From: Oikopleura dioica
Lineage: Eukaryota > Animalia > Chordata
Assembly: GCA_907165135.1 (NCBI GenBank)
Contig: OU015567.1
Coordinates: forward strand, 9,424,001-9,488,000
DNA: 64,000 nt
Direction: 5' to 3'
Position numbers and translations under genes: made by a program. The notes under the pieces are model-generated. The model searched no databases, had not been told where the DNA came from, and saw only the letters and a program-made list of their open reading frames with translations. Numbering within the stretch: position 1 is the first letter of the stretch; every line of letters begins with the position of its first letter. Shown in pieces: positions 33,589 through 38,335 of this stretch.

Positions 33589-35730
33589 ATGGAATCGGTA
33601 GTTGAACGGTGTAAGAGAGAGACACATAAGTTCAAGAAATTGTACGACTTCGAATCGGCATACTGGTGGGCAGAGAAATGGTTCTCCTCGTTATTGAGCG
33701 ATGATGAGACTTCTTCGAATGCCAAGAATTTGAACTTGTTTGATTCAAAATGGGTTAACTTTCCAAGTAAGGAAAATCATCCTTTCGTTTCGATAACTTT
33801 TTCCTAGACAATGTAATCGACTCGTCATTGATGGAGCCGCTGGAGGAAATGATCAGCTGTTTGATTCACAATTTTGAGTTCGCTCGAGCTGTTCATTTCA
33901 TCAAGACCAACGGGCTGCACATCAATTCCAAGACCTTCTTCTTGCTCCTTCTTCACTGCCAAGTGCAGCTTCGCGATTGGAATAACGCAGAACAAACTCT
34001 CATCGACTACGATGACAGACTGGTTGGCAAAGCTGATCTGACGAATCTGACAGCATCAGAAGATCCCCAGCAGGCCAGAATCGCCCATTTGAAAGGAGTG
34101 GTTTTCAACGCGCTAGAGAAACGAGAACTGGCAGTCGACGAGTTTAAATTCAGTGTCAAATCGGACGCAACGGCTGTTTCGAGCTTATTGACACTGGCGA
34201 ATAGAAAGATGATGCCGGAGAAAGAAGCTCAGTGTTTTATCGAAGACCTGTTTTCCGATCAGAAGGAAGGAGAGTTGAGAAATGTGTATGAAATGCATTT
34301 GACGCCGACCGAGTATACTCAGAAAGTAAATCAAAAAGAAAATCCACTATCGAATATGTGTTCTATAGGTATTTCTGATTGGTAAAATATTGTTTTCAAA
34401 AAATATTCAGAGAATCTGATTTGGCAAGTAGAAGATCAGATGTCAAAATTTAACAACGACACCGCTTTACGGTTAGTTTTCAAAAACCCTGATCTGATAA
34501 TATAAAATTGAAGGCTCTCTTCAAAACTTATGAAGATTGATCCTTACGACGAGCGAATTCTTCTCAATCACATAGGCCTGCTTGCAGAGTCAGACCAGTC
34601 CAATGAGCTGTATAAACTTGGGCATTTATTGATCGGACTTGATCCAGACAAATGGATCGGTTGGTATTGCGCGGGATGCTATTACATGGTCGTGAAGAAA
34701 CATATGAAAGCTATTGATATGCTTCGAAAGGCGCTGACAAAGGACCCGAATTTTGGGCATGCCTATCTAGCACTCGGGCATGTTTTCAGGTAGGAATATT
34801 AGTTCAAAGTCACTTCTATCATCATCTAGCGAGGAAAAAGAACATGATCAAGCGATGAACTCCTACCTCTCCGCCCAAAGAGTGATGAGGGGCTCGGCGT
34901 TGCCTGATTTATATGTGAGCGTGACCTACAGATCAATAGGAAATTATGAAGATGCACATTCATTCATCAAACAGGCCTACAATTGTGAGCCACAGAATCC
35001 ACTGGTGCTTCATGAATACGGAACGAATCTGATAAAGCTGGAAGATTATGAGGATGCGACCAAGTTTATGAATATGGCGCTGAATATTCTCATGCAGAAC
35101 GCTCGACGCAACCGACAAACTGAATGTAAAATCTGTTTCCTGAATCTTTTTATGAAATTTTTTAGTGTCTCCGAAATGGGCTCCATTGCTCTTTAACCTC
35201 GGCACTGCCTTACGCCACAAGGGAGATTTCAACGAAGCGATAGAACTGCATAAGCGAGCACTTATCCTCAGCTCCAATTCTGCCGAAGCGCATATCATTC
35301 TAGCCACCTCGCTCTTTGCCGATAATTTATTCGAGTCAGTCGAGCAGCTTCAAAACGCAATGACTTACAATCGCCAGGATTCATTTACGAACGATATTTT
35401 GACAAGAGTGATGAATGAACTTGGTAAAGAAGACCATTCGGTGCTGTTTGAAGATTCCAGTGATGAAGAAGACGAGCAAATAAAACCGCTTCCTTCGCAG
35501 CAGGATGTTCAGCAATTCGTAACTCCTCAAAATCGACCGAGACTGCAGGTAGAAAATAACTATCTTTGATTTAAAAAATTATGCGCTCCTAGTCGACTCC
35601 TCGAGAGTTCCAGTTCAATGTTGATGATTCATTCGATATGAGTATCGACGAAGATTCAAACATGGAGGATGGCGAGCGACTCGACAACTCCGGCGATTTA
35701 GACGCGTCTGACGATACATTGCCTCTTTAG
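33589..35730 (+). CDS. CDC16: Anaphase-promoting complex subunit 6 (CDC16)
   Basis: N-terminal ESAYWWAEKW, TPR array with DPYDERILLNHIGLL...NELYKLGHLL...GWYCAGCYY...LGHVFSEEKEHDQAMNSY...PQNPLVLHEYG, and an acidic tail. Confidence 0.9.
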
Positions 35731-35847
35731 AAGAAACAAAAATGAATACACTCACTGGCACATTTAACATGTTAAACACACATTTCCTTCAATTCAGTTC
35801 AAAAACTGCCAAAATACACTTTTTTACAATCTAAACTCACGAATTTT

Positions 35848-38269
35848 ATGCAGAACATGAACTTGTCGAGCAGTCGATTCGCAAAAACGCTTCTTTCTTA
35901 CAGACTTCAAAGAAGCCTTCATGTCATCTCGCAGTTTATTCCTCCTTCGAGCAGTGAAGTAACTAAATCGGATTTATACGTATCGACACAAGCAGATATA
36001 ACGAGGAGATATTTCGAAGCTTCTGGTAGAAAAGCGCAGTTGAAAATGTTCTCCATCGACGGAATTCCGGCCAGTTTCGCGGATCACATGAAAGAGCTGT
36101 GTATCGAGGGAGTCCCTGAAGAGCCCGCTTTGAATTTTGAAAAAGTTATCCGGTGCGCGCATTTAAAATGATAAAAAAGATTAATATTTTCCTAGTGTTT
36201 TTGATGACCTAAACCAAAAAGGCTTCATCAAAAGAAAGAAGAGGCTCCACTGGGTAGACTCTGGGAATCGTCGATTTACAAACCCCGTCAGTAAGAAATC
36301 CACGGCTCAAGTTCTCGATGGCCATGGCTGTCGCTTGCAAGTTTATCGATATAATTATTTTCTTCTGGACGGAGACGAAGCTATTCAAGTGTTGAATATC
36401 TTCCCAGAGGAGATGTTGACGGAAGGATTCTTGAAGATTCATTCGAAGAATGTAAAATGTGGGCATTTAATTGGAAGAACGCTCGTAAATCCAGCAGGGC
36501 GAGAGCTCCAACTGATTGCGGATGACTCGCTGGAGATAACTGGAGATCCCGTTTCTGTCAGAGATCCTAACTCAATCGAGGTAATTTTCTGCAAGGAACG
36601 ACTTGCTTTCACAATATTTTAAGCCATTCTGTCCTTATAAATCAACGATTTCCAATGAAGACTCGGATTTTTCGGGATGTCAAAGCGTGATTTCACCGAA
36701 TTTATTCAAGAACAAGGGTCAAAAGAAAATACGGAGTGGAAGTACCGTGCGTGTCCTGATTCGGGCGAATGTCTGCGTCCACAAATCGGTGACGCTGTTC
36801 TTTTGTCTTTCAACGAGTCAGTGCGGAATATCTCTCAGCCGGATGGATTTCTCAAGATTCCTAATTGCTCGAATCTCTTCTTTTCTGACGAGTTTATCTC
36901 CGCTTCTTGCATATACGACGGCAACGGGATTTTCTCGGCGGATCCAAAGGTGGTTGATCTTACTCGGATATTGAATTCTACAGAACGAGGAACACGTGAT
37001 CTTGCTGAATCTGATAAAACAAGAACAATTAAAGTGATCAACGACAACTTCGAAGTGCTCGAGGATCAGAAAGAAATCTGCAGATGGCTCATGTTTTCTG
37101 ACGTATCAAATAAATTCGATGAAATGGATTCGAACTATAAACCTATTGAACCAATCGAAAAACTAACAAAGCTGCAAAATCAAATCAGAAAAGTATGCAA
37201 GTTGATTGAGAAGATACATCAAAATCACGGAGAATGTAGCGCTGACTCTGCTCATTTGGGCGGACTCGACAAGTTGTTCATGGCAAGATTCGTTCAAATG
37301 GCTGACAATCTTCATAATTCTGTCGAGGAAAATAACTTTGATAACTTCACCAACGAATTAGCGAACTTCTGGTTCAAAAGCATTTCTTGGAGAAACAAGG
37401 GTTACAAAGACTACGCAATACCGCTGATGTCGAAACCAAACGATGCAAGTAGAGCAGTTTTCCATCAATTTGCTTCCGTCGTGGATAATTATTTGCGATT
37501 TTTACGTCTTATTCTTCCTTCTTTCGCTGACGAAATGCGAGCACATCTCCCGATGTCTGTTCGAAAAGATGATGAGTTGTTTCCAGTTGAGAAGGCGAAG
37601 ATGGTGCTCGAGCATTTGCCAGTTGATTACATCGAGGGATCGCATGAAATGGCACGGGCTGTGGTGTCGAGCGTTAATAACTTCGTGGTGCTCCTTGAGT
37701 CGGCCAATAAACTAGAAGGTGCGTAAGAGGAGATCTTTGTGCTTACTTATCCTGTTTAGTAAATATTTTGGAGTATGGAACTGCCATCGGTAGCGCAATC
37801 AACGAATTCCCCCAAATCATCTCGAAAGATGCGACCTGCAAAGTGAAGTATACAAAGCTCGCTGATCACATGTTCTTCGAAGATATGTTCTCACCTTATG
37901 ATGGATATTTGACATCGAATGAAGAGGCTTGTGGAAATGCGTTCTATCTAGTTATTAACATCTCTGGGATGGAATACCTTTTGCCAAGACAGCATAACTT
38001 GATCAAAAAGCTCAACAGAAATATAGAATATGCGGAGATGGATCTCAAAACTATAAGAAAAAGGATAGCGACACTTGAAGGAACCAAAAGAACAGGTATT
38101 TCATCACACTCTTACAAACGCTCATTGATTTTTAGAAACGAAAGCTTACAAAGACTGTATGAAAAAGCATCAAAAGATGATGTACGAGCAAGAAAAGTGG
38201 ATGATCAAGAAGACAAAAGTTCAACAGATCATAAACTGCATCGAAGATTCATCCTTTGCTGAGCCATAA
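35848..38269 (+). CDS. Degenerate valyl-tRNA synthetase-like protein (probable mitochondrial VARS2 derivative) lacking catalytic motifs; one apparent -1 frameshift near 36670
   Basis: Colinear with ValRS: IPP...ADITRRYFEASG; VIRVFDDLNQKGFIKRKKRLHWV; HLIGRTLVNPAGRELQLIADD; CPDSGE; an anticodon-domain-like segment (DKLFMARF...LANFW...YLRFLRLILPSFADEMRAHLP); and a C-terminal coiled coil. HIGH and KMSKS are absent. It could be a pseudogene. Confidence 0.75.
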
Positions 38270-38320
38270 GACGGCAACGAAAAACTGTACATGTGACTCT
38301 TCCTTGATTTCAAAATTCTT

Positions 38321-38329
38321 TCATTTCAG
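38321..38329 (+). promoter_or_regulatory. Probable trans-splice acceptor of EIF2B5 in an operon
   Basis: tcatttcag lies 6 nt before the ATG and only about 60 nt after the upstream stop codon. No donor is evident between the two genes. Confidence 0.55.
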
Positions 38330-38335
38330 ACCAAG

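Follow-up and report, generated by a model that had tools for sequence, protein, structure and literature searches.

Introduction

Aminoacyl-tRNA synthetase paralogues without catalytic function have been described in animals, and SLIMP, the seryl-tRNA synthetase-like insect mitochondrial protein, is a catalytically dead derivative of the class II enzyme SerRS. In yeast, pre-MSK1, the precursor of the mitochondrial LysRS, carries cytosolic tRNA-Lys for import and is an active enzyme on its own substrate. Here we report on a gene of Oikopleura dioica that descends from the class Ia enzyme valyl-tRNA synthetase (ValRS). It lies on the forward strand of the window, i.e. the whole stretch of 64,000 nucleotides (nt) analysed (assembly GCA_907165135.1, contig OU015567.1, positions 9,424,001 to 9,488,000). 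We consider it likely that the gene stands for a conserved and expressed, non-catalytic ValRS descendant that has been repurposed as an RNA-binding, probably mitochondrial protein, and whose copy in the window carries a 1-nt frameshift. Synthetase-derived pseudoenzymes are already known; one derived from ValRS in appendicularian-like lineages appears undescribed, and a literature search joining both terms found no published report of a ValRS-derived pseudoenzyme.

The mitochondrial DNA of O. dioica contains a single tRNA gene (Met), and the other tRNAs are assumed to be imported; a tRNA-Val gene was not found in it (Klirs et al., PMC11384887). The same survey found all cytosolic synthetases in O. 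dioica, but of the mitochondrial ones only those for Gly, Phe and Met, and listed the mitochondrial ValRS as absent in O. dioica, Ciona and Styela (PMC11384887). The ValRS-like gene is evidently too diverged for the profiles used there; presence/absence tables based on hidden Markov models (HMMs) can overlook highly diverged derivatives.

Results and discussion

The ValRS-like locus is a gene of five exons with a product of 748 amino acids (aa), which was analysed with the frameshift bridged by X. It was compared with colinear genomic contigs of the sister lineages L001 and L002, with a third relative (L012), and with two further full-length models from TARA Oceans contigs, L006 (814 aa, 4 exons) and L010 (781 aa, 6 exons). 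Each of the latter two shares ~25% identity with the window protein and follows it colinearly along the full length. Both first surfaced as orthologue fragments when an exon-3 profile was run against 1.84 billion representative proteins; gene structure and exclusive homology suggest other appendicularians as the origin of the TARA contigs.

Profile, profile-profile and fold evidence identify the protein as a ValRS descendant that is colinear end to end. Aligned by hhalign, the family matches E. coli ValRS with 92.2% probability (E 5.9e-7) over 672 columns, query residues 16-740 corresponding to ValRS residues 30-951, whereas IleRS and LeuRS reach 0.9% and 0.5%. The full-length family HMM scores 34.5 bits against E. 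coli ValRS (27.9 bits against its residues 151-278), versus -2.6 for LeuRS and -3.2 for IleRS. When a profile of the N-terminal half was run against the whole PDB, only ValRS entries matched, namely the T. thermophilus editing domain (1wk9/1wka, E 6e-5) and the full-length enzyme (1gax, E 5.6e-4). The retained domains follow each other as a first Rossmann half, a CP1/editing remnant, a stump of the second Rossmann half, a probable anticodon-binding bundle and a C-terminal helical arm, the last aligning through to residue 951, the very end of E. coli ValRS. For the anticodon-binding bundle, Pfam PF08264 (Anticodon_1) gives a sub-threshold match (E 0.001; 19.4 bits, where the cut-off is 25.1; covering profile positions 1-130 of 148) which recurs in L006 and L010. 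Foldseek with a low-pLDDT model (pLDDT, predicted local distance difference test) of the exon-3 product returned the ValRS anticodon-binding domain 4xkz on top and exclusively class Ia synthetases among the top 50, and with a model of the L006 N-terminal open reading frame (ORF) its best match was the ValRS editing domain 1wk9. The confidence of the two AlphaFold models is low (mean pLDDT 46.5 and 48.1, respectively), and structural conclusions are confined to which families lead the fold searches. The language-model neighbours of the exon-3 product, taken as a lead only, are all class I synthetases with Anticodon_1; the same search with exon 2 was uninformative. A first-pass annotation, made from the letters of the window, had noted colinearity with ValRS, a still recognisable anticodon-binding domain and a still recognisable C-terminal arm, and had proposed a profile comparison with IARS and LARS; the three observations hold, and the comparison favours ValRS.

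The relationship is significant only through family profiles. Single-exon scans gave no Pfam match to tRNA-synt_1, phmmer with a 349-aa ORF matched nothing among the PDB sequences, and phmmer with the full product reached ~1 bit against E. coli ValRS. The exon-3 profile retrieved 10 family fragments and no canonical synthetase from the 1.84 billion representatives, and only chance matches to ribosomal proteins from the PDB sequences. A resemblance to ValRS that arose by chance in an unrelated orphan gene would fit these failures of single-sequence searches and the missing canonical synthetase, but the PDB profile search, the family HMM, hhalign and Foldseek on two models all give ValRS, and colinearly so. 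Practically no weight remains for the orphan gene, which these four independent, ValRS-specific lines of evidence refute.

The catalytic and editing motifs are a different matter. The HIGH region of the window protein reads IPPSSSEVTKSDL; in the hhalign alignment the position of HIGH itself (HMGH in E. coli ValRS) is taken by TKSD, by ELAR in L006 and by DLTR in L010, and no family member has a histidine there. The block after HIGH (GTDHAGIATQ...) is absent. The editing motif TTRPET has become NIFPEE (HLYPEL in L006, HIYPEL in L010) and the GTG.VK.TPAHD block is missing, though the scaffold of the editing domain is still detected. In the second half of the core, DWCISRQLWWGHRIP of E. coli ValRS is reduced to ASCI, E. 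coli residues 422-553 shrink to ~58 residues, and much of E. coli residues 580-650 falls into alignment gaps; the catalytic core has lost ~200 residues. Up to this point the alignments agree with the first-pass annotation, which had described an erased HIGH, the change of TTRPET to NIFPEE with loss of GTG..TPAHD, and a collapsed core. It had further equated KMSKS with GIFSADPKV. The absence of KMSKS is real, as a KMSKS-like string occurs in no family member; the equation finds no support, since KMSKS aligns with LMFSD (residues 383-387, without any lysine), and GIFSA falls opposite the segment that directly follows WWGHRIP. Missed exons that restore HIGH or KMSKS, considered at the time as a possible refutation, are excluded by the four introns (43, 43, 41 and 40 nt, all GT..AG), which are too short to conceal them. 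The motif losses are shared by L006 and L010 at ~25% identity, and the inactivation is therefore older than the separation of these two from the O. dioica complex.

Compared with ValRS enzymes (E. coli ValS, T. thermophilus 1gax/1wk9, animal VARS1/VARS2), the protein has its domains in the same order, beginning with the HIGH-region strand and ending with the C-terminal arm, probably shares the class Ia anticodon-binding bundle, and keeps a recognisable editing core block Y.Y...P.E.ML....A..HP.D.RY.HL, especially in the TARA orthologues. With 748 aa it is, however, shorter than E. coli ValRS (951 aa), and HIGH, KMSKS, a complete Rossmann core (DWCISRQ...DVLDTWFSS...TG.DI.FFW) and the CP1 editing site, which mark an active ValRS (EC 6.1.1.9), are all four missing. 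Judged from its sequence the protein cannot be classed as an active ValRS. One might still think of an active mitochondrial ValRS that evolves extremely fast: the descent and the presequence-like N-terminus (see below) would suit it, and Oikopleura proteins and mitochondrial genes do evolve very fast (PMC11384887). Against this stand the absence of HIGH and KMSKS in four divergent lineages, the two large deletions, the vanished editing signatures and the mitochondrial DNA in which a tRNA-Val gene was not found (PMC11384887), and we regard such an enzyme as highly improbable.

As judged from these motifs, the protein has long been non-catalytic, yet it is under strong purifying selection. The ORFs of L001, L002, L012, L006 and L010 are intact over all available exons. 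Ratios of nonsynonymous to synonymous substitutions (dN/dS, omega; Nei-Gojobori method) are 0.087 for L001-L012 (dN 0.052, dS 0.597), 0.076 for L001-L002 (dN 0.108, dS 1.435) and 0.104 for L002-L012 (dN 0.117, dS 1.12), i.e. well below 1, the value range that the first-pass annotation had named as support for function. For the window against the other lineages, the proportion of nonsynonymous differences (pN) is 0.11-0.135, while that of synonymous differences (pS) is saturated at ~0.8 and omega is not estimable. In every full 75-codon window pN lies far below pS, the degenerate catalytic remnants included, and the C-terminal third is the most constrained part (pN 0.03-0.06). Transcription, previously thought probable, is seen in sister lineages: P0003, the 300-aa product of a JGI contig, spans introns 3 and 4 in full agreement with the gene model, which implies a spliced mRNA, RNA-seq reads deposited under the same species label lie on exons (the RNA runs being <90% alike to the window), and the end of one RNA read matches L012 exactly across the junction of exons 3 and 4.

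The gene family is functional, and only the window copy is in question, through a single difference in a T-run. A synthetase decaying after the loss of its mitochondrial tRNA, one of two alternatives offered by the first-pass annotation, is contradicted at the level of the family, where the intact ORFs in five lineages, omega values of 0.076-0.104, the spliced transcript and the RNA-seq reads led us to reject a decaying pseudogene.

Descent from a synthetase, lost catalytic residues and long-term purifying selection (omega 0.087), by which synthetase-derived pseudoenzymes are recognised, were all found. The protein resembles SLIMP as a lineage-restricted, catalytically dead animal synthetase paralogue under selection, a mitochondrial location being only presumed here. 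Unlike SLIMP it originates from class Ia ValRS, belongs to another animal lineage, and has had large parts of its core deleted rather than merely mutated.

The difference in the window copy lies in exon 3, which has 1095 nt in the window and 1096 nt in L001 and L002. Elsewhere in this exon a 3-nt insertion and a 3-nt deletion compensate each other, and the net difference is one base at a run of five Ts: the window has GA-TTTTTCGGGATG and the relatives GACTTCTTTGGCATG, and L012 is intact at the site as well. With a T6 run the DFFGM of the relatives would be restored. In the present assembly the frame breaks after residue 241, and the 748-aa frame exists only if the break is read through; the continuous frame assumed in the first-pass annotation, where the break went unmentioned, is therefore a bridged one. 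Either the assembly is wrong at this homopolymer or the gene was damaged very recently. In the run index, 9/9 sampled words across the site were found in three DNA runs of the probable source sample, and 5/9 in another run of that sample and in an independent marine metagenome. Neither looking up the exact protein nor scanning JGI metagenomes for the pattern gave a match that would separate T5 from T6.

If the deletion is real, the gene has only recently been inactivated in the window lineage and is a young pseudogene there, the family being functional elsewhere. We see this as possible, though somewhat unlikely. The base is present in L001, L002 and L012, the T5 words are complete in the three runs mentioned, and a manual reading of the sequence found no canonical alternative acceptor that would bypass the frameshift and rescue the frame. 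On the other hand, the 1.6 kb 3' of the break are open and free of any second lesion, and the window-L002 dN of 0.116 is hardly distinguishable from 0.108 (L001-L002) and 0.117 (L012-L002); the distance to L002 is not raised, and there is thus no sign of relaxed constraint on the window branch. Moreover, homopolymers are the typical place of long-read assembly errors, the 5/9 words in the other run and in the metagenome fit a different run length, and the three 9/9 runs may not be independent of the assembly. As a side observation, a second frame is open for 123 codons at 36603-36974, through the start of exon 3, owing to the 1-nt gap; its homologue and Pfam signals are no better than chance, and it is probably a by-product of the frameshift.

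What could a dead ValRS do? The modules best conserved here are those that contact tRNA in ValRS (1gax complex), and a non-catalytic RNA-binding protein would most likely bind tRNA through its retained anticodon-binding and C-terminal modules. The N-terminus, described by the first-pass annotation as basic and free of acidic residues, indeed has no acidic residue before position 34 in the window protein, and the first 30 aa contain 3-4 K+R and 0-1 D+E in all four lineages compared. By composition alone it is like a mitochondrial presequence, and it probably sends the protein to mitochondria. Of the two alternatives of the first-pass annotation the repurposed factor is now favoured, decay being contradicted for the family, while its mitochondrial and RNA-binding specifics depend on the N-terminus and the retained domains.

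The retained scaffold might instead serve a non-mitochondrial or non-RNA role, for instance as a protein-protein adaptor, with an incidental basic N-terminus. The strongest constraint falls on the C-terminal third, the operon neighbours (TPR/APC-like, eIF2B epsilon) are cytosolic or nuclear proteins, and synteny is lost in the TARA species. However, the modules that are retained best are the tRNA-contacting ones, and the acid-free basic N-terminus is kept across orthologues of ~25% identity, which renders an adaptor of this kind unlikely.

Returning to an RNA-binding mitochondrial protein: the mitochondrial DNA keeps only tRNA-Met and the rest must be imported, so the protein may, at low confidence, escort or hold imported tRNA(Val)-like RNA. 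An equally open alternative would be a structural or regulatory role as in SLIMP. In the former case it would, like yeast pre-MSK1, be a mitochondrially targeted synthetase-type protein binding a tRNA that it does not charge itself; pre-MSK1 is a fully active enzyme, and the likeness is an analogy of mechanism only. Taken further, the dead ValRS, long kept in appendicularians, could be a dedicated mitochondrial carrier or holder of imported cytosolic tRNA (Val or several) that arose when nearly all mitochondrial tRNA genes and the mitochondrial synthetases were lost. We put this forward as a doubtful proposal; if true, the import of tRNA into animal mitochondria would for the first time be approachable through a protein. 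The lineage has discarded almost every mitochondrial tRNA gene, and at least one of its synthetase-type proteins was not lost but remodelled and afterwards kept under strong constraint; the gene is a concrete candidate for the handling of imported tRNAs in such animals.

Several points weigh against a conserved, RNA-binding mitochondrial ValRS descendant. In the assembly the window copy carries a frameshift, and the T5 words occur in three runs of its probable source sample. The RNA-seq reads reflect expression of an orthologue from a lineage <90% alike, not of the window copy. Single-exon Pfam matches are sub-threshold, and the exon-3 profile by itself finds no ValRS by sequence. The low pLDDT of both models limits what can be said about any retained tRNA-binding surface, and mitochondrial targeting has been judged from composition only.

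Gene structure and genomic neighbourhood

The gene runs from the conserved ATG at 35857 to 38269 (Table 1). Exon boundaries were taken from alignments to the contigs of L001 (71% nucleotide identity to the window over 34515-38208) and L002 (73%), in which exons are conserved and introns, diverging much faster, are not. The donor position of exon 1 (CCG/GTGCGC) is kept in L001. An alternative start at ATG 35848, which would give 751 aa, is not conserved in L001 and lies inside the T-rich ...GCAG tract of a putative spliced leader (SL) trans-splice acceptor.

Table 1. Features of the ValRS-like gene, in window coordinates.
Feature	Position	Strand	Remarks
Putative SL trans-splice acceptor	35851..35853	+	CAG after T-rich tract, just 5' of the conserved start; GCAG kept in window and L001
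Exon 1	35857..36152	+	basic acid-free N-terminus (aa 1-27), then first Rossmann strand and HIGH helix remnant
TKSD	35962..35973	+	aligned with HIGH (HMGH of E. coli ValRS) by hhalign
Exon 2	36196..36580	+	CP1/editing-domain remnant; profile and family HMM matches to ValRS editing region
NIFPEE	36395..36412	+	counterpart of editing motif TTRPET
Exon 3	36624..37718	+	end of editing remnant, collapsed second half of catalytic core, anticodon-binding helical bundle
T5 run with 1-nt deletion (frameshift)	36668..36672	+	exon 3; versus L001, L002, L012
RWLMFSD	37082..37102	+	segment aligned with KMSKS loop; RWL(M/A)F kept family-wide
Probable class Ia anticodon-binding helical domain	37268..37678	+	Pfam PF08264, fold search, language-model neighbours
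Exon 4	37760..38095	+	C-terminal domain; intron 3 splicing supported by RNA read end and P0003
Exon 5	38136..38269	+	end of C-terminal helical arm and TAA stop (38267-38269); P0003 spans intron 4

The TARA models need non-canonical donors with AG acceptors to stay in frame (GG at L006:7545, GC at L010:5849, GG at L010:6853), which would fit the non-canonical introns reported for Oikopleura. Within this gene at least four lineages (window, L001/L013, L012 and L002) differ by 14-29% in nucleotides, a divergence that looks like cryptic species under one name.

The gene directly downstream is eIF2B epsilon (LbH_EIF2B, E 7e-24), the EIF2B5 of the first-pass annotation. Its ATG follows the stop codon of the ValRS-like gene after 66 nt (38270-38335), with a TTTCAG acceptor 6 nt before it. 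This spacing together with the acceptor is the layout expected of an SL-resolved operon, and the tight operon-like array proposed earlier is a reasonable picture. The upstream neighbour, named CDC16 at first, is a TPR protein that ends ~125 nt before the ValRS-like start; its matches to ANAPC3 are weak. The eIF2B neighbour is kept in L012, and the TARA species L006 and L010 have other neighbours. On both TARA contigs a BTB/C2H2 zinc-finger gene lies just upstream of the ValRS-like gene (L006:2870-4769, L010:3803-4507), and L006 and L010 hence share synteny with each other, not with the window.

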